A DNA stretch of 64,000 nt from Bigelowiella natans CCMP2755 (taxonomy: Eukaryota > Protista > Cercozoa), in contig ADNK01000555.1 of the NCBI GenBank assembly GCA_000320545.1, forward strand, positions 1-64,000, read 5' to 3'. The position numbers were made by a program, and so were the translations under genes. Numbering within the stretch: position 1 is the stretch's first letter; each line of letters starts with the position of its first letter. Under the pieces are notes generated by a model that ran no database searches, was not told the DNA's origin, and saw nothing but the letters and a program-made list of their open reading frames with translations. Positions 2,715-36,188 of this stretch are shown here, piece after piece.

Positions 2715-2716
2715 GC

Positions 2717-2747
<31 letters not shown>

Positions 2748-2833
2748 ATGACATATCTAACGGCCTCATTGATTGATTGCTACACCCTACGACACGAAGT
2801 ATTTCTCCACATCCGAACCCACTGCCAAATATG

Positions 2834-2871
<38 letters not shown>

Positions 2872-4017: not shown

Positions 4018-4070
<53 letters not shown>

Positions 4071-6501: not shown

Positions 6502-6559
6502 TTTATTCCGGTGCGTTGTTGCGGGAAGTTAAAAAGCTACAATCACTGTTGTCAACATT

Positions 6560-7100
6560 TGACCAAATGTTACGCAATACGTCATCGGCGTTTGCTTCCG
6601 AGCACCTGTCTCTCTCCTCATTAGACATGGCAAGCTAGCAAGCGCACGTCTTGTCATAATTTTTGGCATGCCAGTAGGCTAGCTAGCTAGCACGATTTTG
6701 CTACGCACGCTAGCACGCGCACAGCATGATGAGCATGATGTGCCAGCAAGTTGTGTTGTGCCTAGTGTGCTTCGAAGCAGCACCTTCTGAAACAATGTAA
6801 TTGAAAGAAATAGATTCGTAGACTTCAATGTCATAAGTCATGCTGCCTGCCATCTTGCCATGTCCTCATGATTTCTTTTAATTACTTCATTTTGTAAATA
6901 CACTGTGTATTGTCCGTATTCCATTGTCAACACTTCTAGACTTGCTTCCGTAGCAGCTAGCAGCTGTGATGCTGCCATGCAAAGCAGCTTCAACCATTTG
7001 TTTAGAAAGTGTGCATACCTAGATATGGTAGCACATAGCTAGTATTTACTTTACAACTTCGTGTGTTCAATCGTATGCAATACATTGCATGTGTGCGTGC
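6560..7100. other. CTAG/CATG/TGCA-rich convergent spacer 1 (DHX37 > < ZnF)
   Basis: For example ggcatgccagtaggctagctagctagcacg and gcagctagcagctg; no coding signal. Confidence 0.7.
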
Positions 7101-7133
7101 TCTTGAGTACATAGTCTTTTGTGGCTTATAAAC

Positions 7134-8400
7134 CTACTCAATCGATTGATTTAGAACCGATGACGATGTTCGTTGTCTCTTGCTCCTGTTGTTTCTGTAG
7201 TCATCTTCAATACGGTTTCTACTGATGTTACTATCACTGCCACTTTTACCAATAAAATCACTACTGAATTTCGAATTCATGTGATCAGATGATCTAGAGA
7301 AAGATATCGAGAGAGGGTGGTGGATCTGCTGGATGCTTGGATTTGTATCAAAAGTATAAGACGAGCTTGAAGAACTCGATGAATCAGATTCAGATTTACA
7401 CTGTTCTGAATCTGGGTTCGGATGAGAAAGGATACCGTTAGAGTGTGCTATGACAACCGAAGATGGATTGGTGATGGAGCTTTTTGTGGAATAACTCTTT
7501 GCGAATTTTAAGTGCATTTTCGGTGTCCAAAATGGGGGCCTCGAAGACGGGAAATTTATTGGTGTACACAGTTTACGCTCTTTATTTCCTTTCGATAAAA
7601 GACCGTCTAGAAGCTCCTTTGGTGGAGGCCCCGAGACTACACCAGGAGCTCTTTCAGACTTTTCAAACATCGGGGTTAATTTCGAGGTTTGAAACAGCTG
7701 CGGTATCATGTCAGCAATCCGCCCACTGTAGATATTCTCAACCTTCTCTGCTTTCCCCGACCGTTTCGACTTAATATGTCTTTGTAATTCGACAAAGAAA
7801 TTCGGTCGAATTCGCTTCCTTGAAGGTTTCATGTGAGAAGCGATTCTCGCATCAAAAACAAGTTTCGAACAGTTTGTCTTTTTGGATTGAGTGGGGTTAT
7901 CTGTCCTGCACACCGCACATCGTGTTCTTGCCACGTTGTTGTGCAATGTACAAATAGAACAGACCCAATGGCCGGGTTTCTCTAACGATACCGCGCTTGA
8001 TTTGAAGTCGTCAGTCCCCATGATTTGCTCTGTTTCTCCTACCGTCACTTCTTTCAGGGTGTGGATGCATGCACTGCCAAGGAAGATCAGTTCGGAACTG
8101 CCTTCCTCCCGTTTTGGGGGTCATTCTTTCGGAGCGACATGCATCAAATCATGAAACATGACGAAATGACACGTTCCGCGCGTGCGAACAAGGGGATCTA
8201 TCTATGGCAGATTGTTCATGTGCGAAAGAATCACACACGAGAAGCCGTTGTGAAAACTGACAGGACTCCTTCGCACAGCTTCTCGCACCCCTCGATCGTT
8301 TCTTGTGTCACTTTGGGCAAAATGTTCAGGAAAAACTGCCGGTACTGTGCGCATCCTGCCGGTACCTTTGATACCGTAGACTTTTCAAATCCATGGAATG
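7134..8400 (-). CDS. RanBP2-type zinc-finger protein with Ser-rich disordered C-terminus; 5' exons unresolved
   Basis: The 304-codon ORF 7134-8048 contains WVCSICTLHNNVARTRCAVC (W-x-C-x2-C-x3-N-x6-C-x2-C). A plausible upstream coding frame lies at about 8230-8390. Confidence 0.65.
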
Positions 8401-8687
8401 TGTAATGCGATTGTGATTTTTAGTTTGTGATTGGGTTCTGTGATTTTTTTTCGGAATCCAAGGTTTTAATTATTATTTTCTCGGTTTTTTCGGAATCCAA
8501 CGGTTTTCCTCCCGCTTGAGCGTTACCTCCTCAGCCCTTCATAACGATTAAAAAACTCGAAGCTCGAACGGGTATATCTACCATATCCTCAGGAGTTCAA
8601 ACTTGTGGCTTACTGTTCATTGTCATGTGGTGAAAAAGAAATAGGAACTCACAATCATGTTCCATGTTAGGCTAGAAACTCACGAAA

Positions 8688-9786
8688 ATGTCGACGGTTA
8701 AGATTGCTATGGTGGGCCCGAAGGGCATCGGCAAGGTATTAAAGGAAACCGCAAGTTTGTTTCATGGCGCCAATGAGTGTTGAAAACTATTCAGTTGTCG
8801 AATTGAAATGTGTTGGAGGGGCTTGCTATGCACTTATTGTTGAAATGCACTTTGGATCTTCATTCTGCCTTTGTTCATTTCAGTCTGTCCTATCTAATGC
8901 GCTTGCGGGTGACTTCTCTTCCTACGGAGACATGCCGACGGTCGGGGTTAGAATACGAGAGGTATTGGAACTAGCAATGTTATCGAGTTGGATATAATAT
9001 AATCAAATACTTCGTTCAGATTCGGGTTCCGCTTCTAAACGATTATTCGACTATTCCTGTCGAATTGTGGGATGTTTCCGGAGATATAAAGTATCTCGTG
9101 CTAAACATATCTTTCATACACTATTGTATTCATACATTCTCTATGTCAGATACGAACACTGTTGGCCCGCGATTACGGACGGTCTCAATGGGCTTATCAT
9201 AGTTTATAACCCTAAGAACCAAATGCAGTCAAAGGAAGTTAGCTTATGGTAATTCACCTACAGATGATTTGTTTCATAGATTCATAGGGGTACTACACTT
9301 CTGTATAGGATGGAAGCTTTCTGCAAAAACTCTGATGTTACAAGTGGTCAAGTGGTCATATGGGCTCTTAATTTGCCGACGGATCAATCCCCACCTCCAA
9401 TAAAATATGAAGGTTGATAGAATCTATATTGATAAATTAAAATTAAACTGACGAGACATGATTTTAGGCAAAACAGGAACCCTAAGAATCCCTATAGTTG
9501 GGGTTTCCATCTCTCAGAATCCAAAGGTTTCTTTAAGTAATATGAAATTTTATAGAAAAACAACTTAACTCTTTCTGGAATTTCCCGTGTGTTAAAGGCC
9601 AATGAGGATATTCAATTTAATGGAGATGTAAGCTGGCAGTCCTTCGCTGATGCTTGCTACAGGATGCATCCAGACAATCAGGTCCTCCCTCCACGACTCT
9701 TGTGTCGGTTTTGGACGCTCACACATGACTATGAAATTCAGGAATTGGAAGATGAAGACGATGCCTTTCTAGATGGCAACAACTGA
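8688..9786 (+). CDS. IFT22: Intraflagellar transport protein 22 / RABL5 small GTPase-like
   Basis: Spliced exons MSTVKIAMVGPKGIGK|SVLSNAL..PTVGVRIRE, VELWDVSGDIK|YEHCWPAITDGLNGLIIVYNP..EVSLW, with a P-loop and the RABL5-like 'CWPA..G.IIV.N' motif. Acidic tail ends ELEDEDDAFLDGNN*. Confidence 0.85.
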
Positions 9787-9849
9787 GCTAGTGAGCAATG
9801 TTGGACACCATGTTCGCCGACATCCGAAAATCATACTTTACGCACGCAT

Positions 9850-10440
9850 TACTACATTCTAGGATTGGCGGCCAAATGCTCAACTGAGCTGGATGTGAGA
9901 TGAAGCTGTTGTAGAGCTTCATCGCAGCAACTAGCAGCGATTGCCTGGTCCAGGCTAGCAGCTAGCAGCAGGGCTTGCAAAGCCAAATTTGCTGATCACT
10001 TTGCAACTTTGCGTGATCAATTGTGTGCAATTTAATCTGTGTTCCTTTGAATTAACATCAGCCTGCTGCAGTGTGGGGATTTTCTTGTGTCACAATGACT
10101 ACTTAGAACCCTGTGCGCGTGCGATGCGATGAAGCTACGATGATAGACATGCAACATGATGTACATACATGTGTTGTTACGTGCACAAAACGCTCAATAC
10201 GCGCATGGTTGATTAGATCGACTGCGAGCGATGCATGTGTCTGGATATCGCGAGCTACGGCGCCTAGCGACGTTGCATTGGCGAATTTCGGACATGGCAT
10301 CGCGGCAACATTCTATAACATAGCAACCTACCGAAGAAACATTGAGGCTTAAGCTAGTTCGATCTCATTTTTAGCAATACTAGACTCTCATCATGAAATG
10401 CAGCAAAATTTATTCCTAGTTCTGGGAGCTGCACGAGCCC
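9850..10440. other. CTAG/CATG/TGCA-rich convergent spacer 2 (IFT22 > < kinase)
   Basis: For example caggctagcagctagcagc, gacatgcaacatgatgtacatacatg and gcgatgcatgtg. Confidence 0.7.
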
Positions 10441-10559
10441 GTGAAATTCTTATGCCCTAATTATAAGAAATACGTACACGAAAGTAATGAAAGAAATGGG
10501 AATAATTTGTGCAAAGGCGCGTGGCAGGATCACAAAATTGTCAAATTGAAGACTCGCAA

Positions 10560-13260
10560 GGATTTGAACAGGAAGCTTCTCATAATTTTCTCTGCTTCCT
10601 TGTCCTTTGTAAAAATACATGATATTTTTTCGTTTGACCTGATTTAGAGCATACTGTTGAAGATTGTAAACGAAATCAATCGCTTTCGGACGTGAATAAT
10701 TGTGGGCAAGGACAGCCTCCTATCGTATAACATGATTGTAAATTGCAACACTTCATCAAATCCCCGGACAGATTACGTGAAAATGAAACGATGCAACCTC
10801 AATGAACTCCTTCAATTCTTCGTGAATTTTAATCGATGAAGGCACCTTCAGCGTGATGACGTGTCAATATGCGAACTATTCTCCACCAGTTACCAAAACA
10901 CCTTAAAATTTTGCCTTTTCCTTGCAAAATCTTCTCTCTCACATCTTGAATAGCTGAATCGATGACCCATGTCAAAATCGATAGATACTAATCTTTAATT
11001 ATCTAAATTAATCTCTTACTTCATGAATGGTTGATACGAAGTAACAACAAAATATGTGATCAGCCCCAAACTGTATACATCCACCTTAATATTTATGCAA
11101 ATAAACAAGTTACCTTTCTATGTTTTTGATCAAATTGATTCTAATAAACCTTTTCATCATACTCGACGGGTTCAATGAGAACCTGAGAAGTGCCAAAATT
11201 GTCATGTTGATGAAATGAAGAAAATTGCCATATCAAACCTCTGGTGCCATATATCTCAGAGTTCTTTCGGAATAGCAGATGTTCCGGTTTTGTTTGTATC
11301 ACATTACAAGGCACCATGTTAAAGATTGAACTGTCAGGAACAAACTAAAGTGAGTAATGTAAAATATCTCCTCACCCCGTTCTTCCGGTCATTTTGTACC
11401 CCCTGCACATAAAATCAAGATTCAGAAGGTTATTACAGAATTCAGAGATTTTAACCTATCCATCTTTTTTGAAGCCCTTATTCTAGCAAGTCCAAAGTCC
11501 CCAAGTTTTGCCTTTCGATTATGTCTTAGAGATACTTTCGATAGTGGGAAACAATCAATATTCTATTAATGTTAAACGAACTGTTTTTTTTTATTTTTGA
11601 GGAAGTTGGAAGTTGTACCTGTCCACCGGAACCAAACATGATGTTATCTGGGTTACCGCATGCAACAGATGTTCATGATTTATGAAATGGAAAAGAATAC
11701 AATGCTTACCAGGCTTCAAATCTTTCCGAATTAAGTCCACAATATACCAAAAATAGATCAATTCAAACTCTTTTAACCAAAGAAATGGTCCATACCGCGG
11801 TGGATAATCGGAGGCCTATTTCCGTGTAAATATGCAACTGCCTATGTAATCAAGTAAATGGAATTATTCTGATAGGACTCAAAGATAACTTTTGCCCAAT
11901 TTTCTTCGTTCTATCACCTGTCCAATACTGATAGCTATATCCAGTGCTTCTTCCAACCTCAATTCTTCAAATGTCAACGAATATATTCATATTTACCAGT
12001 CTACGACAGTGTTTGATTTTTAAACAGCATGGTTAGTTACTTTTATTTCTCATCTTTTGGGTTAAGTTGCCAGAAAACATATACTCCATCAAAATCTGAT
12101 ACAAACGAACACATAGAACATAATTGGTTAATTGGTTATTACAGATATTATTTGGTATTTTACACCCTTTCTCCATGCATTGGATGGAAGCTTGCGCCTT
12201 AATTTGAAAAACGGTCAGATTTCTTGTACGAACGATGCTAATGCTATAGAAATGTATGGCTGATATCGCATACCAAGGAACATGACGATGTTTGGATGGC
12301 GAAGGGTTCTCCAAAGAGCTATTTCTCTTCGAATATCCTGACCAAAATTCTTAATGATTTCTCAGTTTTCAATTTTGTTTGTTTCAATTGGAAGTACTTT
12401 GACGTCGTGCTGGTTCTCTCTGTCTGTAATCTGCTTTATTACTACCTGCAGCACAAATATTTATTCCTAAGCCAAAGCTATTGACAACACAACTACCTGG
12501 ATTCCTCGAAAGAATCCTCGATATATTTGAGCGCAATTTCCCGCTAAATAAAAATAGAACCTTTAGAAGCCAAATTCCAACTTGAGTTTACCTTTACCTG
12601 CTATCGGTTTGTTTTCCATCTTTATATCTGCTGATGGAACAAACCTGTGTGTGGCACCAATATTTACGATAGAAGATATGTAACATGTATGGTACATCTA
12701 CCAATTCTCCCTTTTTCCATATGTTAGAAGGAGGCTTGGGATTTCATTTGATATCTTAGAATTTATGTGCTTTGCCAGATACTTGAATTATCATTATTAT
12801 GGTCACTTAATAATGAAATTCACAAATAGAACCGAGTCTCTATTTACCTTTGGCACGCCAGAATCTGGGGAACTTTGATGAATGTGTTGCTGATCAATTT
12901 TCCCCCTCGAAGTGTTTAATTTTGAGTCTTTTTGAACCTTGTGTTGGAAGTGGGACATGCTCATTTCATGAGTAATTGAAGTTTAGCGGTGAGCGTACAC
13001 GAACTTGTTTACCCTTAATGACAAGGAAAAATACCTGGTCTACATCGTCATCATCGTCTGTGAGGACATTGTATCTGTCGCTCTTCGTAAGAAAACGCGG
13101 TGATTTGTGGTCGCTCCGCGGTGAACCAATCAATTTTGAATTCTACCATAGTAATGCCCCAGAACATAAGCATAGGTGGTGACAAGACTTGTGGAAATTT
13201 CAGTCACCATTTGTGTGGACAAATAGAGCCTTGATCCTTAAGACACTGTCATGACAAAAG
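10560..13260 (-). CDS. Tyrosine-kinase-like (TKL) Ser/Thr protein kinase, multi-exon; ends approximate
   Basis: Minus-strand exons give REIALK, IRREIALWRTLRHPNIVMFLG, AVAYLHGNRPPIIHR|DLKP, KAKLGDFGLARI, YKMTGRTG|TLRYMAPE and KVDVYSFGLITYF. Confidence 0.85.
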
Positions 13261-13882
13261 GAAAATTTCACCAATGAACCACCTGGTCATCTATTTCATC
13301 CACATGTTCACATCAATGGACATAGTGACACAGCAGTTCAAGTGCGATAAAGTAAAAAACCACAGCCTCTCACACTTCTCTAGAGAGTGATGGATAACCA
13401 TTGAACATTTTAAAATACATGTGATCCAATCTATCAAAGTATCTCAAGTAGACACCAATGAGCGCGAGGCAAATGACACGTTCCATTGATCATTCCATCA
13501 TCGGATCGACTGACTTTGTTCTGAGATGTAAGATCCGGGTAGAGGCTCGGTAAAAGCAGGAAAGAGCGCAAATTCGGCATTTCCTTTCACGCGACAAACT
13601 GCATTTCTCCTCACCAAAAAAAAAAGGACTTAGTGCTGGTTGGAGTTGCCGATATTTTAATTAGGGTTTAGCCGGTGGGGCCCTATTTCGTCCGTTCTCC
13701 AAGATTTAACAGACCCCTACCCAAGTTCATGTCGTAGGGCAAAAAGGCCCTCGAGTTACGAAAATCGTAAACAAATAAACAAAAGCTGGAAGATTGGAAA
13801 TCCGTTCCCACCATCACAAATCTCATGAATGATGCATAAACTATTATTCATCAAATCCTGGTCACGGTAACCCTTCCATAGA

Positions 13883-14437
13883 TTGATCATGGTAGAACAT
13901 GATAATAATGAGGACGATGAGAAGCATGAGAAAAAGCTACTGAAGCTACATCGACCTTGCAATTCTTACAATCTCTATGCAATTGAAGCCATTGTGCGGC
14001 GTTACTTTGTCGCAAACTCCTCACCGGTGGATCTCGAGGACCTTTGGTCTATCATGACCGAAGATGTGGTCGCTGAATACCCTTCTAGTACATCTCGTGG
14101 ATTACAGCAGTACAAAAGTAACGTAACACGGAATACGAATATCATTCGAAGGTGCTTTTGCTATAGTCGTGTGAAACCTACTAATTTCGAAATATCTAAG
14201 AATGAAAAGGGTAAAAACAATGAAGTCAATGTCATAGTTCCTTGGACATACTCAGCGATGCTTTTGTTCTGTTGTTGCCCATTATGTGCATCTGGGGTTA
14301 ATATCTTCACCATCCGATCTGAACCTGGTGTTGATGAAGACCCATCAAGTGATAGAATTTTGATCAGTTATGTTAAGACAGTAGTGGGAAGTACGAAAGG
14401 CCGCGAAGAAGCTTCAAAATGGAGGCAGAACAGTTGA
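13883..14437 (+). CDS. Hypothetical protein, possibly SnoaL/NTF2-like fold
   Basis: Uninterrupted 184-codon ORF with protein-like composition. The segment 'DLEDLWSIMTEDVVAEYP...SRGLQQYK' resembles the SnoaL-like N-terminal pattern; the fold call is inference. Confidence 0.55.
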   Translation: MIMVEHDNNEDDEKHEKKLLKLHRPCNSYNLYAIEAIVRRYFVANSSPVDLEDLWSIMTEDVVAEYPSSTSRGLQQYKSNVTRNTNIIRRCFCYSRVKPTNFEISKNEKGKNNEVNVIVPWTYSAMLLFCCCPLCASGVNIFTIRSEPGVDEDPSSDRILISYVKTVVGSTKGREEASKWRQNS

Positions 14438-14499
14438 GCTGCCTATCATTTATCAACAATGAAAATTACTACACAACGACATAGTTTATAAATGAATCA

Positions 14500-15600
14500 T
14501 GAGCCTTGCACTGTAGCATGTAGCGTGTACTCCGCGTCAACGCGTCAACCAACATGCACTTTAGTGTTCACTTGTCGGACATAATATGAATGCGCACATC
14601 TTTTACGCATTTGTGTGCTTTTTTAATCGATGATTTTGGCTCACAATTGCCACCAATTCTAGAATTGTTAGCAAATGCAAGTCTACGAACAATGACAAAT
14701 GTACGACTTCTCGAAGACATGAACAAAGCACAGGTCTAGAGGTGTACTACGCACGCTAACACGTGCTGCGTGCTGCAGGGAAATAAAGATTGCCATCAAG
14801 ATGGTAGCTGCGCTGCACATTGCACAGCTAGACAGCTACCTAGCTACATGAGCAGGATGGCCATTGAACAGATTTGACTTAATTCAATCATTGATTATAT
14901 CCGTCTCTTGCACAATCTGTTCACATTGTGTCGCATGCACATGTAATAGACATGCTAGCATGTTCGGTTGTTGCGCGGTGCTGGCATTCAGACTTGCATC
15001 ATCACAGAAGCACAAGCATGCCCCATCTCCACATCGCCCACGTGCTGACATGCACACTGCTAGACTGCTAGACTGCCTAACTGCTGGCCAACGATGCATG
15101 CAGCATGATCAAAATGTGGGACAAATAAACATGAAGTTGGCGAATGCCGCATCATGCTAGCAAGGCATCACACCTCACTAGCTCATTTCAATTTTAGCTC
15201 GCACTGCATTGCCAGATTGCATTGCCAGATTGCATTGCAAATCAACATGGCTTGTGCTGCGATGCACTGTCTAGCCGTGCGCATAGCGACGGCATGCATG
15301 ACCTGTCATGCTAGCATGATGGCAGATCGATCTAGGTCACGGCTCTGCGATGCTAATATTCACCTGACAATTTGATGTGACTGAACACCTTGAAACGGTC
15401 AAGCAATTTTGTTAATGTGAAATCTGCAATGATGCAATTTTGTTCGTCGTTGCACCTTGCAAACAATTGTACATGAGTGTCTGGTTGCATCCACTACACG
15501 ACACAGTGCTAAACGCAACTGATTAGACTTATATGAAAAGGAAATGATTCTTTGAAGTAGTAGAATGGTATGTGTCACTCAGCAATCTGATCTAGTGATA
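14500..15600. other. CTAG/CATG/TGCA-rich convergent spacer 3 (SnoaL-like > < ADSS)
   Basis: For example acagctagacagctacctagctacatg, gacatgctagcatg and gcatgcatgacctgtcatgctagcatg. Confidence 0.7.
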
Positions 15601-15648
15601 ATGATTATTGTCTTATCACAATCCTGCTAGCCTGTTGCACTCTGGTAA

Positions 15649-20036
<4,388 letters not shown>

Positions 20037-22484: not shown

Positions 22485-24142
22485 TTATTTGCTAGCTTTC
22501 TTCTCGAGAGGGGGGAACTCTTCAAAGAATTGTGCAAAATTGGTGAGCGACATGGTCTTTGCAAAATTCTGCCCAGCCATGCTTGAGATTTGTACTAGGT
22601 TTGGCTTGTCACCATTGCAGTCGCTTTGACCCTCACTGCACAGAAGTACAGCATCCTCATGCTCAAGTTCAGTTACTCTCTCCAGCTTCCATTTGAATTC
22701 TTGCGACTCTATCAACGACTTCTGCTTGTCATCCTTCTTATTTGCCTCCACGGAGCACACGTACATGCTCTGCAGGAGATGTACCTACACAGGGAAAACC
22801 GGAAACAATTTTAGGAGGCAAACATATGCTACAAATTACCGCACTACCACCAAACATAATACCAGCTGCATTGACGTACACGATAACACTGATGTGGTCA
22901 TGGAATGGACGCTTTCTGATTCTCTGTCACATTGTACATATTTCTCACCGGAAAGTCTGCAGGGAGAGGCTGAGAGAGCAATCCCTTAAATGCTTTCACA
23001 GAATAGTTTGCGCCAAGGGTCACGAGAGGCGAGATCGGCCTGGAAATCAGATACTTGCCAGGAGCCAAAGTTGCGAGCGCAACTAGCTGTGAGGTGCTAT
23101 CCTCATTGTACTTTTCGAAAGCAAGCTCCTTACACATATTTGGTGCAGGGAAAGACTTAACAAGAAGTTGGTCGATAATCCGTTGTAGCAATCCTGCTGC
23201 GTGTTCGGGGGACTTGAGCTTGGAGACGTGCTGGAAATAGTGATCCAGTAGGCCTTTGAAGGCGGCAAGATAACGATCTACATCCTGTTGATCATAGCAG
23301 TCACTTGAGCATTCTATCTGGATCATCTTCGAAAAGAAAGCAAAAGTGGGAGGTGACGTGTACTTCATAATAATACCTGTTTCCCAACTGGCTCCCCATT
23401 GTCTCGGGTCATCCGGAAGTGCATGAACCGTGCGTCCGAATAAGTTGCGATCATCTGCTGCAGGAGGTCCAAAGGCAGTTTATCAAAACTCTTCGCAAAC
23501 TGTTCTTCAATTGAAGAAATCTTGCTTCCGGTCAGCCAGTCTGCTGCCGTCTTCATAACAAGAGGAGAATGATTCTCTTCACTGCTTTTTCCTTTGTCAT
23601 TCGGCACCGAATGTCCAATGGAATCAGCGGCGACAAGAACCAACCTAAATTATTGGTGATGATAATAACATGATCAGAATAAGAACGGTAGTAAACTATG
23701 GTGAAGCAACCCTGTTCGCACCCTCATCCTCACAATTCTAGTATTCAGAAGAATCTCTGGATTAGAATTGCTCCAAAAACCAGCACCAGTATCCACCAAA
23801 AAAACACACATATTTGACATTCCTGTGCAGGATTGATAGTATTACTGTTCCGGAAGGCTCTCGAAGGCCAGCATGTTTGATTGCGATTCGAGCATCTCCA
23901 ACGTTTTCGTCCAAAGAGAACGGAGAAGATCCTGGCTTTCCGCAGTAGCCCTGTTTGCCTCGCTAGTCATGCGCTTGATGAGAGCGTTCCCCCCCTGCAA
24001 TACAAACGAAGAAAATGATTTGTTAAGTCAACAACCATCAATGCATGGGGACTATGATATGGAAAATAAGTTTGTGTGTCTCTGTCTGTGTGGGGGTGCC
24101 ATTCCACATACATGAGACTCTGCTAATTGGGTGTAATTAAGT

Positions 24143-24186
<44 letters not shown>

Positions 24187-25720
24187 TGATCTCATCATCT
24201 CGCAGACCTGCTGCTGCCGCTGATCATTACAAGACACGTAGTCCTTAATTGATGCGAAAGACTTCTGGTAGATGCTGAGCTCATTCCTCGCCAAATCGAG
24301 GTATTTGTTCAGACGGTCGCGGTGGCGAATCCAGCCCATAGACAAGTCCTCCAAAGCTTTCTTCGTGTCTCTGTCTTTCTGCTGCGCTTCAAATGAGGAG
24401 AGCTGCTCGGAGAGCTTGTCAAGCTTGCGGTTGAGGACTCCCACCTTCGAGAGCGAAATGTCGTCGGGGCCATTGGTTGTGTCCTTGTAGGCACGGATCT
24501 ACAGATAAGACGGTGATACGAATAATAACAAAGGGATAATAGTTACTCACTGTGATGGATGTTATTGTGATGACAACAATAAACTCTTCGTGTAGGCGTC
24601 ATCATCATCATTATCACCATCATCATCATAATCCCTTCTTTCCCTCTCCTCCTCCTCCTCCTCCTCCTCCTCACCAGGCGTTCCCCTCGGGTGAGGAAAT
24701 ACGAGCTGACACGCTGCTGCATCTGCACGGCCCAGTCTTGAACGGCAAGCGTGTTGTTCATGCTGTTCACTGTGCGCTGCACGCGCTCTTTCGCCCAATT
24801 TTGTCGACGCTGCATCATTCCTTTGCCTGATGACAATAAGTATTTACCATTACAAAATCACTCGTAGATTTGATGCCTCATCGATTCAATTACGCACCAT
24901 CGATTCTTGCAATTTGTAGCTCTGAATTATAGAGAGATTTGGCACGTCGAAGCAAGCTGTCTGCTCGCTCTAAGGCGTCAGCAACAACGCTGTCAGCCTC
25001 ATCACTCGAGTTGGCACGCTTGACAGCACCATGTGCATCCTGGATAACCCTTATAGCTTCCGTGTGTGCTGTTTCCACCTATTGTGATATCAAGTAGCAT
25101 TTCGAATGCACATTAGCGAGGCCGATGTTGCTTCGAGTTTTCCCCGAGAGATCGGCGATGATGCCTCTTTCATCTAGTGTGCAAATTGGTTCTCTCTCTC
25201 TCTCTCTCACATGACTACAGACTTGCACACACGACGTACCTCTTCATGCACGTTGGGGGGGAGAAGATATTTTTCGACGCTGCTCTGGAAATCACTGAAC
25301 AATTCGGCCGGATTTGTTTCGAAAAGCATCTTCTTCTTCGGCGCGACCTATTTGTTGGAGGCAGCGGTATATATGGAACGCGGTAGAGTTAATGACACGA
25401 TTAAGAAAACGGTCTAGGCTTTCATCAATTCCCTTTACCTTCGCAACTTCCTGCTCCACTTTAAGCATCGTCACTTGCGAGTAGTAATCCATGAGCATGT
25501 CTATATTGGTCATTAAGTTTTCCGCCAAAAGCTCAATGTTCTTGATGACAGCCGCCGTTCCAGCACGGACGGCGTCGCGGAGGCAATACAGATCGCACAG
25601 CACCTTCAAACAAAGGCAAAAACAGAGAAATGAATGAAAAAGTCATATTATTTCCAATATAATGGATTAAAACTCAAATTCAATACTTTCCCCCCTCGCC
25701 CCATGTATAGCACAAATGCG

Positions 25721-25763
<43 letters not shown>

Positions 25764-26670
25764 CCAAGTTGAACCCATTTTGCATTGGGTTGCAGTCATC
25801 GTATCCTTCACGTTCTTCATGCATGTCATAGCCGTTTTGAGCGGTGGCCACTGCAAAATCCTTGATCGCGGACGTGAGAGCGTACGCGCGATCGCACGTT
25901 TGGGAGAATTGGAAGCCCATAGAGAACGAAGGCCCAGCTAGTCCTCCTCCTCCACCAGCGGAAACATCAGGTAGGAACGCACACTGAACGGAAAGACTGT
26001 CAACCACCAAGCCGATGGTGTCGCTGACCATCTCAAAGCTTAAATGCACCTGTTTGCGGATGATGTTTGTAAGAATAAGAACGACCTATAAAGCTGGAGA
26101 AGAGAAAGTACCTTAGCCGATTCCCACGCGCGCTCGATATCTCTTTGGTTGCAGTCGTTCTCAACGGCCGCTGTCATTGTGGTTTCGTCGGTCTTTCCCC
26201 ATTTCTTCCAGGATGTGCCTGCTACAATCCCACAAGCGTCTTTCTCCGTGAAGAGTTCCTAAGGAAAATATAACAGAATAACGGTTATAATTGTAGTACT
26301 AGTAGTCGTAGCCACACACCGTAGAAGAAGAATATTTTCAAGGCAAATACAGAAGTTTCTTTCAGTGTTTGCAGACGACTAATCATGCGGATCAATATAT
26401 TCGGTGTATATCTCCCTCAGTATATTATTACCGTGGCCTCTTCGTAGGCCTCCTCCTCCATCTTTAAGCAGCCTTCGTTGTACTCTGGCTGAGCGGCCTC
26501 GAATTTGACTATTGCTGGCTTTTGCGGTTTACCACCAGGGGCAGCGCCGCCGTTCTTAGCATCAGATGTCATTCCGTCACCAATCATTGGCTTGAACCCG
26601 ATCAGAGAATATCTGTGAGTGGAGGGGGAAACATATGATGAGGATCAACACCTGCACGCCGTCTAGGCAC

Positions 26671-26707
<37 letters not shown>

Positions 26708-28030
26708 GTGTAAAATTTGTAGACAGAGAATTTTCTCCTCATTATTTGTTACTTGGTGCCAACAGATGTCTCGTAGAGCCAGTTGACTTCCATTGGATGT
26801 ACGGTGTCGCCATTCTGCTTGGAGCACCTCTCCTTGGACGCATCCTTCTCAAGAGGGTCGTAGAGACACCATTGCTCAGTAGTCTTCTTGTATTTTATCG
26901 TCGGAACCTTGTTGCTATGCAGCTAATACGATATTCGAGGATAAAGAACAGATAATAAGCAAGTCAGCTTGCAATAATATGAAGCAAATCCATACGACTC
27001 ATTCACGATATTAGCCATTCACACACTGTACGCGCTGGGTACGACGTTCTTTGGATCTCTAATCATCTAGTCATCATCATTACAACTTACCATCCCACTC
27101 TTGCAGCGCATATCAGCCTTGCACAGGGCGTTCATTTGGTTGATATCGCTCTGACTAGACCAGTAGCTGTAAAACGGCTTGTCTGCATCCTTCGACTGCC
27201 TCATTCCACCGACCGTGCCGACGTTACTCCTAGCATAACCGTTTAAGCCAATATTGCACACCATCTGTTTGTTGCTTTTGGTTCCAACGCGTCTGTTCAA
27301 GGCCAAGCGAGCGGCCTCAACGGTGCGGTAAGGCCCGTCTACACTGCGGCGCTGCAAGCCAACGACGCAAAACCACGTGCCTGAGTTTGGAGAAGGGGTC
27401 GGGGCGGGGGTTGGGTACAGTGTAGGAGCCTTCGAGGCGCGTTTATCCCTGCACGGTTTGCTCTCCAAACACATCTTATTCATTGTCGCGACGTCATCTT
27501 TACCGCGATAGTAAGCTTTGAAGTGAGGGGCACTGAGTTATTATTAGCGAAAAGTCTTAGCTTCAAGATGGGCAGAAATTGCAATGGAGCACTAGTTTTT
27601 TTTATATCCCCTCCCTATAATACACCGCTACTTGGCTATTACTCTTACGTACATTTGCCTCTGCATTCCATCTTTAGAGTTGAGAACTGACGGGTTGGCA
27701 CGGGCAGTCTTTGTAGCGGAGGTAATCTGGCAGATCATTTGGGGGTTGAGAGAGGAAGCATCGTACTTGTTAAGTTCTGCCCTGGCAGAAGAAAGGGACG
27801 AGTATGGTCCTGATACTGTACCCTGTTGTTGGAATAAATGTAGAGACCATTATTCGTCAAATCATTGGTGAATTCTTTCGATAACTGAATGAATTGAAAA
27901 CTTATCTTCCACCTCTGCATTCATATTTGTTCTATTACGCTCAGGTCCTCTCCTCTCTCTCCCCCTCCTGGTCCTCTCCTCTCTCTCCCCCTCCTGGTCC
28001 TCTCCTCTCTCTCCCCCTCTTTCACACGCA

Positions 28031-28090
<60 letters not shown>

Positions 28091-31000
28091 ACAGCAGCAG
28101 CATAAAAATGGCTGCAAAACTAATATACGCTGACCTGAGCTCTTCTGGCAACGCACCAATGGTATTGTTTGGTCGAATAAGGCGTAGGATATCGTGTAGG
28201 GTACCGAGTACGAGCAGGTCCCTAGCCAGTACAAACAGAAGTTTTACGATGGCCGAATCGCGGCGAAGGAAATCAGATTGAGACTGTATAGTATCATCAT
28301 AAATAATAGCTACTTACTACCCTTCTGCAGGCTTTACTGTGACTGCATTTGTGGTTCAATATGTTTATATCGTGCCAGCCAAACCAATACTTCTGGAAGC
28401 CTCCACGAGCTCCTATGTTATGATGATGATGAGGAGGAGGAGGATTTGATGATGATAGTGAGGACGCTCCTTTGGAATTAATAGAGAGAACGAAGACTGC
28501 CGCTAATGATTCAGTTGTCAGTAGCATTTTTTGTTTTGAAAAACAGAAAATAGAAATTACCAGAGCTCATAACCGCATACACACTCTCACATCTTAAAAT
28601 CGACACCCGATGAACTCACTCTGTTACTGTTTTGTCACTTCTATTCAAACAATAGCATTTGCACACAATCGCAATACCTGCTCCCTGGTTCCTGCCTCCA
28701 ACTCTATGCGGATCACGTTTGGCCTTGCCATTACGCATTTCGCACACCATTTGCCGATTGAAGATATTTCCTCTCACTTTATTCAGAACCCTTTGCGCTT
28801 GCGCCACGGTTCTGTAAGGACCCTCTACATTACGCTTGTTCATTCGCGCGACACAAAACCAGGTACGGCCGTCTACCGAGTCATCATCATGCGCCCATTC
28901 TTCAACAGCAGTAGTTTCATTGTATATTTCTTCAGAATCCGCTCCCACAAGATCAAAAGCAGTATGCTCCTCTCCTTCCATGAGATCTGCTGATGCTGCT
29001 GCTTCACGATCGACATCGGGATTTGCTGCTGCTTTCAGATTCACACCTGTATATACTTCTCCTTCCATAAGATCTGCAAGTTTCACATCTGTATTCCTAT
29101 TGACAAATTCGTCATAATCGTAGCTAGAGATCTCATCGTGATGTTGTTCCATTGCCTCATCGTCCACAGAGAGGATGTCTTCTTCATCTTCCATTTCCTC
29201 GTCCTCCGCAGCCAACAATGTGACTGGAGGCTCGTAATCACGAGGGGAGACCATTCCCGTCTTGAAAGATAGCGTCTGTACCATCTTCGGCTGTTTGAGC
29301 GAGTCATAGCCCGTTGGACAGTAGATGCCTTCGTAGCTTCTCATACCGTTCAGTGGTAGAGGTGAAATCATTGCTCCAGAATACGATGGGTGCATGCAGC
29401 AGCTCAGCTTGACAGCATTCCACTCATCTGCCTTCTCGTACTCAACCTCAACAGCACCAATCACGGTGTGGCGAGGGCATTCTGGATTCAATTTTGCGTC
29501 GCGCATGGCCTCTGCAGGGGTGAAACTTTTGGAAATCTGGTAGAATCGCTCCATTGTGCACGCTCCCATTCCGAGGAGTGGCGCACACTTGAATTCCATG
29601 CGGTAATTGTCGACCTTTCTGAAGGCCCACATCGCCTCGCCAGGAGGGCACTTTGCAGTCATCGTGACCTTTGCGAACATCGAAGTGTACACTTGGGAGC
29701 CAGTGTGGTGAGAGCGGCGCATCCGCACGCATTTCGGGTGAAGGCCGAAGCTCTGCAGATAACCGACATGAGACTCAGGGCATCTCCAGTCAACATTTGC
29801 TCGACGGGCATTGATGAGTTCCTCTTGCTTGCCGATCCGCTCTAACAGTTGCATTGGCGTGTAGGTAATTGAGGATGAACCGATTGGATAACGTGTCGGA
29901 TGGAGAGTAGGGTAGGTCGTAGGATACCGAGTTGGACGCAACGTAGGCTTGCGAGTGGGGCGCTTCTTCTTTCCAGTCAAAACGCTGTTGAACGCATCGG
30001 CCTCAGAAGAGTCCTCACTTTCAATAAGAGCTGCGGCCTCAGAAGAGTCCTCGCTTTCAGTAAGAGCTGCTGCTGCTGTCTCGGGTTGAGAGTTTGCGGA
30101 CGAGATCTCGTCACCATCACCCTCCTCATCGTCGTCGTCTCTGCTATCATCTTTCTGCTCTTTTTCCATCATCTGCTGTCCGGAGGCGTCGATGACCTTC
30201 ATATCGGCTATACTCTCATAAATCTCCTGTTGTAGTAGTAGGTGACGAACAGAGAGAAAAAATTAGAGGCAATCAAAGACGTAGTAATAAAGTTGGGAAC
30301 ATATGATAAGCCATACTCAGCATAAAATACTGCGACATTGGGCATTCCAAGTGTCCATGAAGAGCATGGAATACCTCTGTGCCAGTCTCGAGCATCAGAC
30401 CGCTCTTATCCAGATACACAAGATCAATTAGCTCCCACGTCCATCGTTGAGGAAGGTTAGAATCCTTCACTTCCCCAGATCGATCCACCGCACCGTTATC
30501 CGGCCTTACTCTTAAAAATCTCCTGTTGTAGTGGTTCCAAAGACCCACGTGACCGTCCCTCCCGGGCATCACCTAGTTTGTATTTAGCTCTTCAATGCGT
30601 ATGCTAGGGTAGTACATTTCATAAATAGGAAAGGCGGGCTCATATTGCCCAGTTTGAAGAGGAGTTCTACAAGAATCCTACAACAGAGGTTAAAAGAATC
30701 TCGCACTGTTCGTTGACCCCCCTTCACTGTAACAACATCCGGGAGACCTTTGAGGCAGTGCTTATGTAACTTTATGGCAGCATACATTACATTCTGCATG
30801 AGAAAAACCACACTGCATAACCCCCTCCCGTCGCCTCACCCCACCCCCAAACCTTAAACATTGCTGTCTCAAAGGAAGGATCAAACCGGCCATGGGGAGA
30901 GTAAGATGTCCATCTGATTTGTGAAGTCCCTTGCGGCATATCGAGGAATCTCTTGTTATACATGTTCCAAAACGCGTACAGTCCGTTTCCTGCGTCTACG

Positions 31001-34000
31001 ATTTTGAACCTCTCCATTTTCCACCGAGCAGGAATGCCTTTTGGAGACGCAACAGGGCTCAAAGAAATCGTATTACCCCTAGGCTTTAGGTACTTAAACA
31101 CGCTGATGGCAAAGAGTCCGATGGTACTGCCGATTCTCAGAGGAACAGAGGGCGGCCCCGGAACGACGACTTCTTTCGAATTCTCCCATTTTGGTGTCAT
31201 TATGCATTGCTCCATCGACAGCACATCCAGGATTTTACGAGATCCCTTAGGGTAGTCGTGAAGTCCTAGGCACTCCTTTTTGTACTGCTTTCGGCCCTCA
31301 ACTGGTGGAAGTGACATCTGCAGAGCGGTTGTCCCATCCAACGTAATGCGCCAACCAAAGTCTCCAGGAACTCTGTCGCTTACGCGCTCATGGATCCTGT
31401 TTGATCTGAAGCTATACTCAATCCACTTGGGGCGACTCTCATGCTGGAGCTGGAAGACGCCAAAGCTACGGTATTCCATAAACATCAACTCCTCCATCAC
31501 AGCGTTCTGCATCTCCACCGCCTTGGTTGATGGGTCGAAGATCATCACACACCCTGAGCATTGCATGTTTGTCAGTCCAATAGCCCCGGTGGTGTCAATC
31601 CACTCCCCGTCCATACAAACGATTGAATCTCCAGCACCTTTGGCCTTGATCAGAGAGTATCGCCCCTCAAGGCATGAAACTGTCAGCTGTGTGCCGTGGG
31701 GAAGGGTCGGTGGCATTACCATCTTCTCATCCTGCGTATCCACGTTCATATACGTGCAGGGAGCGCACATCTCAATCTTTGAATCAGCTAGGAGCCGGTT
31801 GACATCGCACTGAATGGCCAGATCCTCCCACTCGCATTTTCCGTAGGGAGAGTCCATTCCGGTTATGTATGCTCGGCGTTTTGTCTCTTCCCAGCATTTT
31901 TGTGGGTTGGCGATGTGGCAGAGACGGGTTTGTCCCTTTTGCTTCGGTTTCGCGTACATGTTCACGGTCACTTCTGTGCCAAAGACGCGCACCATATTCT
32001 TGCAGTCCGAATACAGAACACATGCGCTTCCGTCTTCTGTTTCCAAGAATCCGAAAAAGTTACACCTCGGATCATCGCCGCAGTCAGTGGCGCAAGAGTC
32101 TCCATCTTTGAACGACTGCGACAGCAGAAACCTCGTGTCACAGACATGTGGGGCAGTCCAGAGGTGGTGCCTATCGATCAAGAGGCGATTGAAGGACGCC
32201 CCTGAGGTCATGGCTCCCTTTGAAGCGGCCTCAAATGCGCTATCGTCCACTGGGTAGTTCTTACCCCAGGGCTCAAAGAAACATTCACAAGGGTGAAGAT
32301 GATAGTCATTCTCTATCTCAGTGTTGGGGTCATCAAAGACGAAAACCGCCTTTTTGATGTTCTCATCCTCCGACCCAGAAGTGTCCGTGATCAATCCAGT
32401 CGCGGCTTCCCTGTCAATTTCTTGTTTCTTCTCCTTTCCTTCCTCGCCGTTTTCTTCCTTCTCGCTGGAATCGTCCTCGTCGGGATCTTCGAATTCAATT
32501 GGGAGGTTGCATCCGCGACCCACGGGATAAATAACTGCCTTGCTCTTACCGACCACGTTCTTTATAGAAGATTCGGAGTCCGCGTACGGCACTTGGTCAT
32601 AGAGAAACCTACCTCCTACCATGGCCGTTGGAGCCCCGGTAGCAGGAGACTTTTTTGCGGTAGCGCTGCCCGATTTTGTTGATGAGAGTGCTGCTGCCGC
32701 CATTTTGTCCTTGTCCATGTAAAAGGCCTCTTTGTCGGCAAGGCTTTTAGCAGAGGTACGGTTGTTAGCCAGATTAGGTTGTGGCCCGTTAGTCGCGTTG
32801 CTAGAGGAAGAAGAAAGGTACACGTGCGTAGCTGAAGAGCTCACTGCAAGAAGAGAGACTTCAGAATCTGGGCCCAGGTTGATAGGGGTCGTGAGACATG
32901 CTTCGATGCCGCCGTGCGTCTCAACGTAGCTCTTCTCGATGTTGATGATATCGTCACCCTTCGAGCTCGCCTTTCGAATGACCCAGTCGGTGTTCGCCAC
33001 AGTACATCCAGAAGGTAATTTGGCCGTTGTGGATTTATCGAATTGCTGAAGATAAAAGGTGTACTCCTCGTGCTGCTTAGGCTTGACATAGATCGGTTGT
33101 GGAATAGCCTTTTCACTATGCACCACTGGGCAATATAATCCCGAGATGTACGCTTGGTTTGCAACGTCCACATACACGCACGTCTGGTGCAGCTGGCAGT
33201 TATCAATCTTGAGCTCAGAGGTTTTTGGAAGATCCTCAGCCGCCCAGGGTAGGAGGCCTTTATTACGAGAAAGCACGATTTCGGAGCACCGTTTCGTCTT
33301 TTTGTTGAAGCTATATCCTGGACAGGCCTTGTTCTTTAAGCATTTAAGCTTACAGGCGATGACGTCTTTCTCAGTAGAAGACTCTTGGCTTCGAACGGAG
33401 GTAATATAGTCTCCATACTGAAGTCCTGGTGCACGCACCCAACAGTGATCATCGTCAATTTGCACGACTAAGGGATGGGTGCTTTTCTCCAACCGGACTT
33501 GAGGCAGATAGGAAGCAGACTCAATCCCAACGTACACTTCACATCGTAACGTAATGGATGCCCGCCCTCGAGTCGAAGGCATGAACTCACGGAGCCCGAC
33601 GTGTGGCGATCCGGAGATCTTTCCTGTGATTGGGTGAACATTGATGACAGGTAGGCCATGGATATTGACGTTTCCTGTCGCCATATCGTACTCCACAGGC
33701 AGCTGGTTAGTGCTGCTGCAGTCCAAGTTAACGGAGAACTGTCCCTCGATGTCCTTGACCTTGTTCGTGCTGTACTCAACTCTGTCCAGAGCGCCTAGCT
33801 TGACGGGTACGACGATTGGCTGACCAACTGTGACGCGGATCGAGGCGGATGGCTCAAACGTAATCGTTTGTGGCTTGGATGGTGGGTAAGCGAAAACAGA
33901 CACCTGCAAAGAGTGTTTTTGCAGCCCTGAAACTGCGGTGACGTAACAGCTGCTACGCATAACAGTTTCATGACCCGAGGGTGTCGTAAGGTTATTTGTG

Positions 34001-36188
34001 AACATCATCCCCTTGTATCGTTCGAAGAGGTCAGCGTAGTCCTTGGCCGTCGAGGTATCCTTCAGGTAGATAATCCCCGTCTTCTCGTCAATCGCTACAA
34101 AGCTCTTTGGCGCGCATGTCATCGAGTATTTGTAATTAGCAGCTTTTGACGGCGCCCAAACAGGTTGGAATTCCCGAGAGAAGCTGTATTCGTCGAAAGT
34201 GACTGCCGATCCAATGCCTTTATGGGGAGGGGGTGATTCGCAAATTAAGTACAACCACACGTATCTAAAGTAATGGTACAGACATGTACAGACATACAGA
34301 ACGTGATTGTAGAAGACAAAAGGAAAGAGGTTGTATATGTTTTCTTCTACCATAGCTTGGGTTGTCAGTCGAAGAGTAGCCAAACGAGTGAATAGTGATC
34401 TCAATCGTGTGATTGGTATCGATGTACTTTGGATTCAACTTATTCGACTCTGAAACTGATGGATTCCGTGCGGTAACCGTGCATTTTACAGCGAAGGGTT
34501 CATCGTGCATTGGGGTTCCAGAGATTACACCGGTGTTTCCTAAGGTATTAAGAAGATACGGTAGTAACTGAAGCAATTATGATAACAATGACAGAACAGT
34601 AATCGTAAAAATTACTAATAATATAGACTAGTCTACCACACAATCCTAACAAATTACCGTCCATGGTGAGATTGAATTTGGCCAGTTCACAGTCTTTCGA
34701 GAGAATATACGACTTTGCAGTGCGAGGAACCTATAATTTCAGAATATCGATTGATGCAGCGAGTAGTGAATGCTGAATACTGAATCGAAAAGCTACCCCC
34801 ATTCTATACTTTACGTGGAAACGCTTTAGGAGTCATGATTAGTTGTTGATTGTAAAAGAGTCACACTTACCGGCACCGCCTTAAACTCAGAACCTACTAA
34901 GCCCATACCATTCGTACGCTCCATGTAATACCTGTAAAATTGCCAAATTTGAATAGAAAATCGCCATAAATACATAAGCCTTCTAAGAGAGGTCGATCAT
35001 CATTACTCGAAAGGAGTTCCGGAGTGAAGTCCTCCACCGCAGGCGCAGCAGGCCTCTGCAGGAGAAAGCCCCTTGTATCTTGATATAGAAACAACACATA
35101 GACACCCAAAACAGTTCACTTGTAAGATGGAATATTCAAAGGAGCACTAGGTGAAATAATCGGGAAAACCAGAGGCTAACTACGGAGCACCATTTCGATA
35201 TAATTCGTTCTTCAGTACAGTTTTACAACACGGGTTGGATATAAATCTAGATAACTTATCTATACTTATAATCAGCTAAAGATTCTTTTCCAGGGGCTGG
35301 TCTTCCACCATAGCACCATCCTCTGAGCGCATAAGTTGCGCACGAATGACCGTCTTTGTCCAGGAACCGTCTGTCATTCTTGCACTTGATGCACCTCTGA
35401 TCGATCATCTGGTATCCGCCGAAACACTTGTTACATCCACCGTTGCCGTACTCCTCGCAGCCACTATGAATGATTGAACAAGAAGGGTATATCAAGTGGG
35501 TATCTCAAAATTTTCCATTCGAAATATTTCTCTGAAACTATTTTTTACCGCACCTGCAGGCAAGAGAAGATTCTTCCTTATCGAATTCGTTCGGACAGCA
35601 TGTTTGATGCACCTTCTTGCCAACAAAGGAAAAAATGGTGCTCTCAGAGCCGGACTTACATGTGCAGGGACCTTCAGTCTGTGTCGTATCGCAATAGTAT
35701 GACACAGCTGATGCCTCGCCTCCTTCAGCTGTCAAAACGTGGAAGCCTGTGGATGTGGTAAGAGATTATGAGTTGCAGGGATAGCACCAAGAATATTCTT
35801 TATCAAATCAGAACAGATGTGTCTGGGTGTGTATGTCTTTGTGTGTGATTTCTTGTCGGTATAACGACGACAGAGAGTACATTGAAGTGTGATGCTGTGA
35901 CTTTCAGCATAAAAACTTACCAGGAAAGTTAGGACCATCTGCTGGGCAGGTTTCAAATACTCTCTTCTGATGATGCTTCTTGGATACGGCGCTAGAGCCA
36001 TGCGGATTCGCTCTCAGTGGCTGAGATACCGAAATCACAGAATCTATCGCAGACTCCATCGCAGTTTCATTTTGATGTGGCTTCAACGCAGATTGCTTCT
36101 GAAACCAGTGCGCATCAATCGTGGGCACACCCAAAAGAATAGAAGCCAGAAGGGCCAAGCCCCTAGCCGGCTCCCGAACTGAACGCAT
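22485..36188 (-). CDS. Giant secreted multidomain protein (about 28 exons, roughly 3,200 aa)
   Basis: Signal peptide MRSVREPARGLALLASILLGVPTIDA. Phase-compatible GT-AG junctions I checked include 35921/35746, 35554/35463, 30853/30572 (FK|VMPG), 30375/30226 (TE|EIYE) and 27091/26922 (CKSGM|LHSNK, donor GTAAGT); most of the remaining junctions down to 22485 also fit in phase. Modules: Cys-rich, 'C..Y...GWC...ACCACGGG', He_PIG/Ig-like (MDGNTGVISGTP; IHPITGKISGSP), PAN/apple-like, sushi-like, beta-trefoil-like, acidic spacer, three novel repeats, helical C-terminus. Confidence 0.8.
27944..28020. repeat. Intronic tandem repeat of about 26 bp x3, followed by (CA)n(GA)n
   Basis: ggtcctctcctctctctccccctcct repeated three times in an intron of the giant gene. 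Confidence 0.85.
29998..30075 (-). repeat. 36-bp coding tandem duplication in the giant gene (AAALTESEDSSE / AAALIESEDSSE)
   Basis: cggcctcagaagagtcctc occurs twice, 36 nt apart. Confidence 0.85.

Follow-up and report, generated by a model that had tools for sequence, protein, structure and literature searches.

Animal thrombospondins, laminins and matrilins join binding modules to a coiled-coil assembly domain, and the PAN/apple micronemal proteins of apicomplexans (Toxoplasma MIC4, Sarcocystis SML-2 and an Eimeria PAN module) are secreted, disulfide-rich and modular. Here, both groups are compared with a giant predicted protein of Bigelowiella natans CCMP2755, encoded on the minus strand at positions 22485-36188 of the 64,000-nt stretch that was analyzed (contig ADNK01000555.1, positions 1 to 64,000, assembly GCA_000320545.1; hereafter the window). 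This segment is a single nuclear gene of 27 exons. Its 3,243-aa product is probably a secreted protein without a membrane anchor, most likely with an extracellular, multivalent role in adhesion, a coat or a matrix.

The closest counterparts belong to an unnamed family of giant proteins, which resemble the window protein in their leader, N-terminal Cys module, PAN+CCP core, second Cys module and CDLxC-RDAV helical domain. The window protein differs from its best relative, P0001, and from a paralogue in its own genome by added trefoil-like repeats and three extra repeats, whereas other members carry ricin B, TSP1, discoidin or PA14 domains instead. The predicted PAN fold also superposed on those of the micronemal proteins (Z 6.9 and root mean square deviation 2.1-3.2 Å for TgMIC4-A5 and SML-2), and we place both in an alveolate neighborhood. 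In contrast, no sequence family relation beyond the PAN fold was found, the architectures are completely different, the micronemal proteins have no ~900-aa helical C-terminus and the size difference is roughly five-fold. Thrombospondins, laminins and matrilins would be analogous in their small disulfide-bonded modules, flexible linkers and a potentially assembling helical region, and some members of the giant family carry TSP1 domains, a further likeness to thrombospondin-type proteins. However, the helical domain is not homologous to theirs, and AlphaFold 2 (AF2) predicted antiparallel helical bundles here and not a simple parallel coiled coil.

A single gene on the minus strand

The window is eukaryotic nuclear DNA (38-51% guanine plus cytosine, GC) with microsatellites and many short open reading frames (ORFs). 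Two minus-strand open frames are very long (34434-30790, 1,215 codons; 30262-28619, 548 codons). An earlier note, made from the letters of the window, had proposed that about 15 separate ORFs from 36188 to 22485 are one gene for a protein of ~3,200 aa. That the segment is one gene was borne out by complementary DNA (cDNA) contigs and collinear homologues, i.e., by transcript and homology evidence rather than by splice phases alone. The count was corrected to 27 exons with a coding sequence of 9,732 nt (3,243 aa), running from the ATG at 36188 to a stop codon ending at 22485:

Exons 1-7, minus strand: 36188-35921, 35746-35554, 35463-35266, 35078-35007, 34931-34871, 34730-34658, 34539-34351
Exons 8-14, minus strand: 34217-30853, 30572-30375, 30226-28678, 28412-28321, 28221-28135, 27822-27653, 27532-27091
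Exons 15-20, minus strand: 26922-26753, 26612-26432, 26258-26112, 26049-25765, 25603-25439, 25347-25240
Exons 21-27, minus strand: 25078-24898, 24826-24675, 24498-24208, 23994-23846, 23644-23377, 23326-22949, 22784-22485

The model frame is open throughout, and all introns are GT..AG and 50-312 nt long. A crude dynamic-programming exon chain over 36188-22485 (25 exons) was easily open as well and was rejected after RNA proved several of its exons wrong. Since an open exon chain can thus be built by chance, fitting splice phases are by themselves weak evidence.

RNA mapping covered positions 25400-31399 (6,000 letters) with four runs of the same organism. A 9,876-nt cDNA contig (run X1, study P1) and shorter contigs from runs X5 (P2) and X9 (P3) skip nine segments of this stretch, the ends of which read CT..AC on the plus strand, i.e., GT..AG on the minus strand. 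The joints on the minus strand (exon end/exon start) are:

30853/30572, 30375/30226, 28321/28221, 28135/27822 and 27653/27532
27091/26922, 26753/26612, 26432/26258 and 26112/26049

A loose contig end additionally connects 25439 to 25347, and in translation the frame remains open over every RNA-defined junction. The gene is expressed and spliced: contigs cross both 30853/30572 and 27091/26922, the two junctions that the note had set as its cDNA check. The latter joint is present in contigs from three studies, and the stop codon of ORF 27067-27483, which the note had taken to be bypassed by splicing, sits within the 168-nt intron that these contigs have removed. Junction 28678/28412 is missing from the joint table because a nearby repeat was masked, and was obtained by arithmetic: contig positions 3390-6032 comprise 2,643 nt, equal to model exons 8 (part) and 9-13. 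The same-organism runs contain 56-69% of the sampled words of 24000-33999 (10 kb), a share that fits a spliced transcript. From raw RNA-seq run X18, 6% of which was read, came 8 reads, too few for strand or transcript ends.

Exons 8-19 were set by the cDNA contigs, and exons 1-7 and 20-27 by collinear homologues, canonical GT..AG sites and contig-length arithmetic. Beyond 31399 the contig holds 3,844 nt vs the 3,872 nt that the model needs up to the ATG, and below 25769 it holds 2,168 nt vs the 1,996 nt needed down to the stop. It therefore corresponds to the modeled mRNA, 28 nt short at the 5' end and with 172 nt of 3' untranslated region added. The end of the independent X5 contig lies at most 35 nt from the 3' end of the 9,876-nt contig.

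A phmmer search of 1.84 billion representatives, with a query of 1,147 residues from the long open frame around exon 8, returned 261 relatives with E as low as 1e-220. The window protein was also searched exon by exon, with pieces of P0001 as a proxy for the multi-exon C-terminus. P0001, the best relative (2,565 aa; 41% identity over ~1,000 aa), is an uninterrupted ORF on the 28-kb marine metagenome scaffold L001 (62% GC) and is collinear with the window from 35714 to 22925. L001 (ENA metagenome scaffold KOPF15-1_SAMEA7422968 scaffold_1929) carries two intron-free paralogues, at 256-7902 (minus strand) and 8496-16193 (plus strand). This pair, n1 (2,548 aa) and P0001, is divergently oriented and 42% identical, and n1 is equally collinear with the window. 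One paralogue was found in the window's own genome (G000:C3064:19872-29956, minus strand; loci L003, L004 and L009-L011). It encodes ~2,550 aa, is intron-poor and built like P0001, and its collinearity with the window gene runs from 35762 to 22928. As P0001, n1 and the paralogue are all collinear with the window, N-terminal modules and helical C-terminus belong to one protein. L001 is gene-dense, its neighboring genes have only weak matches in the window's genome, and its features suggest an unsampled relative with a compact genome.

Several introns of the window gene contain (GT)n, (GA)n or (TA)n microsatellites (25710-25768, 26664-26716, 28005-28096 and ~24150-24195), three of which were masked in read mapping, hiding two joints from the table. 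Two introns are very short (26050-26111, 62 nt, RNA-confirmed; 23327-23376, 50 nt, modeled only), alongside introns with lengths of 70-310 nt.

Modules of the predicted protein

The regions assigned along the protein are listed in N- to C-terminal order, with the basis of each assignment in brackets:

36111..36188, minus strand: signal-peptide-like N-terminus, ~aa 1-26 (hydropathy)
35921..36110, minus strand: Cys-free spacer of ~50 aa (aa 27-~76) with a dibasic QKR at its end (translation)
34871..35746, minus strand: N-terminal Cys-rich module, exons 2-5 (collinear homologues)
33900..34730, minus strand: He_PIG-like (putative Ig) region with a G-x-ISGTP motif, exons 6-7 and start of exon 8 (Pfam)
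33283..33375, minus strand: first PAN/apple, core of the Pfam hit (PAN_1, E 3.1e-7)
31426..32388, minus strand: family signature core, ~320 aa (alignment of 45 sequences, AF2 model)
~31915-32184, minus strand: second PAN/apple, in the core (fold match)
~31549-31752, minus strand: CCP/sushi module, in the core (fold match)
30375..31200, minus strand: beta-trefoil-like repeats, end of exon 8 and exon 9 (transitive homology)
29885..30226, minus strand: acidic spacer, then PT-type linker (translation; Pfam PT, E 0.0012)
29255..29683, minus strand: second conserved Cys-rich module (collinear homologues)
27091..28867, minus strand: three repeats of ~95-130 aa, exons 10-14 (translation over RNA-confirmed junctions)
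22485..26922, minus strand: C-terminal region of ~920 aa, exons 15-27 (collinear homologues, AF2 proxy)
25439..25603, minus strand: exon 19, most conserved C-terminal motif, CDLxC-x-RDAV-xx-G... (homology, RNA depth and loose contig end)

The core is the strongest conserved block across the 261 relatives. Among 45 aligned sequences (alignment A2) it holds 11 invariant residues, nine of them cysteines (C34, C83, C99, C123, C129, C157, C165, R171, C239, C258 and W263), and it carries the signature LHPC-x-C ... CRLYS-x-C ... QCD ... TCV-x-G-x-W that marks the family. The AF2 model of the core (predicted local distance difference test, pLDDT, 86.7) matched PAN/apple folds in VIA (plasminogen PAN, Z 8.3; MANEC, Z 8.1; HGF N domain, Z 7.3; factor XI, TgMIC4 and SML-2, about Z 7), and an ESM Atlas shape search of the core gave generic PAN matches only. 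For the CCP part, in which C239, C258 and W263 are invariant and C277 nearly so, the best match was MASP-2 (Z 6.4, Foldseek probability 1.0), followed by C1s, DAF and factor H (Z 5.7-4.2). Foldseek probabilities for these four were 0.97-1.0 at weak E values of 0.03-0.2. A search of PDB sequences with exon 8 gave no significant match.

The modules that the earlier note had named fared unequally. Its PAN/apple domain stands on both Pfam (PAN_1 in exon 8, 30.6 bits vs a cut-off of 21.4; PAN/apple families PF00024/PF14295) and the plasminogen-like fold, and hydropathy agrees with its signal peptide and absent transmembrane anchor. Translation, the Pfam PT match and the AF2 proxy model likewise show the PT linkers, acidic spacers, triple repeat and helical C-terminus. 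The sushi module was matched at the level of fold only, as given above, with no Pfam match to PF00084 in the window. Its He_PIG repeats drew a match below the Pfam cut-off (PF05345; 15.6 bits and E 0.022 in the window, cut-off 24 bits) that spans just the C-terminal third of the profile. The corresponding matches in P0001 (17.8-21.1 bits, E 4e-4) are under the curated cut-off as well. The beta-trefoil repeats, which run across the 280-nt intron 30852-30573, had no direct Pfam match to ricin-type lectins (PF00652/PF14200) at E up to 1. They gave multi-stretch matches to P0015 (9 stretches), P0068 and P0077, and the repeats of P0015 match RicinB_lectin_2 at E 1.2e-12, so that a ricin-type beta-trefoil is weakly suggested via P0015 only.

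At the N-terminus, the sole Kyte-Doolittle window above 1.5 in the whole protein is aa 11-29, and a hydrophobic leader is found in many full-length homologues (hydropathy of 34 relatives). The predicted protein thus has a leader and no transmembrane anchor. In the same exon, a conserved FETC, the start of the mature protein, comes after the QKR spacer; in P0001, which has no spacer, FETC directly follows the signal peptide. The spacer (35960-36110) is possibly a propeptide, removed by a protease of the Kex2 or furin type. Plastid or periplastid targeting by the spacer was considered and set aside, given the disulfide-dependent extracellular modules of the mature protein and the absence of the spacer from P0001. 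Exon 4 (35078-35007) of the N-terminal Cys-rich module encodes the peptide motif CCACGGG. The module is collinear with n1, with the in-genome paralogue and with aa 55-225 of P0001; it is matched by dinoflagellate giants too, and a Pfam search assigned it to no family.

Downstream of the trefoil-like region, the acidic spacer contains 29 D/E residues per 100. The second Cys module has collinear counterparts in P0001 (aa 1373-1613) and in dinoflagellates (P0005, P0006, P0008 and P0025), and had no match in Pfam or among PDB sequences (nothing significant in the PDB search with exon 10). The three repeats that follow share the pattern W-F/C-C-V ... GPY ... QMVC ... INxMNxxC and are separated by PT linkers, and copies of the unit also occur in P0077 of Gymnodinium smaydae and in P0006. 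The triple repeat and the beta-trefoil-like region are both missing from P0001, n1 and the paralogue. These two blocks are therefore inserts in the window gene, the larger of the two paralogues in this genome. Together, window gene and paralogue record module insertion and intron gain or loss.

For the C-terminal region, collinearity extends to P0001 (aa 1752-2509), n1 and the paralogue. Its first ~260 aa, up to the motif exon, hold most of the conserved cysteines and the remainder forms long helices; seven cysteine positions are nearly invariant in alignment A1 (24 sequences). Exon 19 shares 55-60% identity with P0001, n1 and the paralogue, and its motif is matched by nearly every long dinoflagellate or Chromera relative (>25 proteins), always C-terminal to the core. 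The helical domain with D-C ... C-D-L-x-C-x-R-D-A-V that marks the family thus lies downstream of the core here too, and cDNA places both on one mRNA. An AF2 model was built on P0001:1700-2565 as a proxy, with the 24-sequence alignment. It consists nearly entirely of long helices, with a short beta hairpin between them, and residues 520-740 reach pLDDT 77-93. Foldseek returned nothing below E 0.25 for this model, VIA-wide gave generic helical rows at Z <=10 (noise for helical models, ~Z 13), and the only rows from a PDB sequence profile search were coiled-coil-like. Nothing usable came from an ESM Atlas feature search of the C-terminus, and the small C-terminal exons matched nothing meaningful in Pfam. 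The modeled domain is thus conserved and has no recognizable structural precedent in the Foldseek, VIA-wide and PDB profile searches, and is probably disulfide-stabilized.

A giant protein family and its probable role

Judged by sequence, chlorarachniophytes, dinoflagellates and Chromera have in common an undescribed family of giant proteins. Relatives of 2,000-4,500 aa from dinoflagellates and Chromera match five window modules in conserved order (N-terminal Cys module; 33.9-32.9 kb; core, 32.4-31.4 kb; second Cys module, 29.65-29.26 kb; exon 19, 25606-25440), at 25-35% identity for the dinoflagellate members. The predicted scaffold runs from a Cys-rich N-module, an Ig-like region and PAN through a linker to the PAN+CCP core, and on through the second Cys module and a PT linker to the ~900-aa helical domain with conserved cysteines. 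Between core and second Cys module, putative binding cassettes vary by lineage, the dinoflagellate inserts being ricin B, TSP1, discoidin (PF00754) or PA14 (PF07691). By hydropathy of the model and of 34 relatives, among which leaders are common, an N-terminal leader without a transmembrane anchor marks the family.

Names were looked up for 28 of 150 listed matches, plus a few more. The closest named relatives come from the chlorarachniophyte Amorphochlora amoebiformis (GAB5370315). Giants in dinoflagellate transcriptomes, which the earlier note had mentioned, were indeed found in Gymnodinium smaydae (EukProt transcripts), Effrenium voratum (CAJ1416515), Symbiodinium (CAE7497806) and Durusdinium. 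They were joined by Chromera velia Cvel_3628 (A0A0G4FQB4) and Cvel_27174 and by further members in marine metatranscriptomes. Their records read 'Apple domain-containing' or 'unnamed protein product', none with a functional name, and literature searches on Cvel_3628, Chromera apple plus sushi and dinoflagellate PAN domains found no relevant paper. A quick maximum-likelihood tree built on the core unites five sequences, those of the window gene, its paralogue, Amorphochlora and the two L001 proteins, in one clade (Shimodaira-Hasegawa-like approximate likelihood ratio test, SH-aLRT, 99). This clade sits on a long branch and is not nested in any dinoflagellate subclade (unrooted tree, midpoint rooting), and dinoflagellates occupy many paralogous clades. 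The tree, being unrooted, is compatible both with ancient ancestry among stramenopiles, alveolates and Rhizaria (SAR) and with lateral transfer.

For the window protein, an extracellular multivalent binding role appears most likely. The N-terminal signal peptide would take the protein into the secretory pathway. Several lectin-like modules in the N-terminal two-thirds, kept at a distance from one another by flexible PT and acidic linkers, would bind glycans or proteins, and the helical C-terminal domain may serve self-assembly, or attachment to the cell surface or a partner. Secretion is favored because the sole hydrophobic segment is N-terminal, homologues have leaders, the PAN and CCP folds depend on disulfides and have invariant cysteines, and cysteines are nearly invariant in the helical domain too. 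Binding is favored because the sugar-binding apple domains of TgMIC4 and Sarcocystis SML-2 are among the neighbors of the PAN fold, and because of the CCP fold, the RicinB_lectin_2-linked repeats and the ricin B, TSP1, discoidin and PA14 domains of relatives.

Several points weigh against such a role or against parts of the model behind it. The adhesin or matrix role was read from domain content alone, He_PIG and beta-trefoil have no direct above-threshold matches, and the leader was judged by hydropathy. We infer self-assembly by the helical C-terminus from a model of moderate quality (pLDDT 60.8; predicted template modeling score, pTM, 0.48) that represents the proxy P0001 and not the window's own sequence. 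The main remaining weakness of the gene model is that exons 1-7 and 20-27 lie outside the RNA-mapped stretch; the contig ends 28 nt before the modeled ATG, which leaves the start codon without RNA confirmation.

Alternatively, the protein could be the content of a regulated secretory organelle (an extrusome or mucocyst), stored condensed and then discharged, with the helical C-terminus driving packing or rapid extension and the lectin modules making the discharge sticky. Members with looked-up names come from chlorarachniophytes, dinoflagellates and Chromera, and dinoflagellates possess ejectile organelles, e.g., trichocysts and mucocysts, which counts toward this explanation. Solubility and secretion of so large a protein, its acidic spacers and its long helices would fit it, as would the possible dibasic propeptide site behind the signal peptide. 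However, no similarity to known trichocyst or extrusome matrix proteins was found, and ciliates, the classic extrusome bearers, were not among the matches whose names were looked up (28 of 150 and a few more). In our view, storage in such an organelle is rather unlikely. We regard as improbable a modular toxin or membrane effector, in which the lectin modules would target the surface of prey or competitors and the helical domain would insert like ClyA, Hbl or Cry6. Hints in this direction were weak: the Hbl binding component 2nrj (Foldseek E 1.2), Cry6Aa (E 0.06 in the profile search of PDB sequences), Vip3 and Cry8 among generic helical rows (Z ~7.3) and the beta hairpin of the model. Every match was below significance and typical of any long helical bundle, and hydropathy over the whole protein found no hydrophobic helix or hairpin after the signal peptide. 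The conserved cysteines of the helical domain argue instead for a disulfide-locked structure. Significant similarity to ClyA-type pore-formers (ClyA, Hbl-B, Nhe and Cry6Aa), with their hydrophobic beta-tongue or head, was not found in the protein, leaving the toxin or pore explanation without support.

A different kind of objection is that two or more adjacent genes, e.g., a lectin-module gene ending near 27067 and a gene for a helical protein, were merged by coincidence or assembly. The in-frame stop in ORF 27067-27483 would allow this; a frame-compatible exon chain can arise by chance, and a contig spanning two genes is not proof of a single transcript. Yet this stop is intronic in the contigs of all three studies, the ORF is continuous over every junction, and the same N-to-C architecture recurs in uninterrupted ORFs elsewhere and in the paralogue, so that a merger of genes seems highly improbable.

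With the gene model, scattered ORFs that resisted annotation become one defined product of 3,243 aa. The analysis also reveals a conserved, uncharacterized family of giant, probably secreted proteins in chlorarachniophytes, in dinoflagellates, among them the coral-symbiotic Symbiodiniaceae, and in Chromera. An invariant framework with exchangeable cassettes that would bind carbohydrates or proteins, and a large helical domain for which the searches found no structural precedent, make a part in cell-surface recognition plausible in organisms whose surface biology is poorly known. With 27 exons here, an intron-poor paralogue and intron-free metagenomic relatives, the family also offers a case for module insertion and intron gain or loss. 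As this is one ordinary-looking eukaryotic gene, the role of which was read from sequence, the immediate impact is moderate. More speculatively, and with considerable doubt, the ~900-aa Cys-stabilized helical domain could be a new extracellular assembly or membrane-engaging machine, and the family a set of 'variable lectin cassette' giants for cell-surface recognition, either ancient in SAR or laterally spread. If so, chlorarachniophytes, dinoflagellates (including coral symbionts) and chromerids would use such giants in prey capture, mating or host-symbiont contact.

Unusual architectures among the relatives

P0014 and P0035, which belong with P0039 to a set of 4,300-4,500 aa from Gymnodinium smaydae and relatives, carry the C-terminal motif at ~aa 1,830-1,900 and have a second short match to the N-terminal part at ~aa 2,530-2,590. 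Two units may lie in tandem in these proteins, or the transcript assemblies may be chimeric. P0039 is similarly long and carries the motif at a comparable position. The core is cut in two by several hundred inserted residues in P0067, P0044 (Chromera velia) and P0054, indicating that its PAN half and CCP half are separable.

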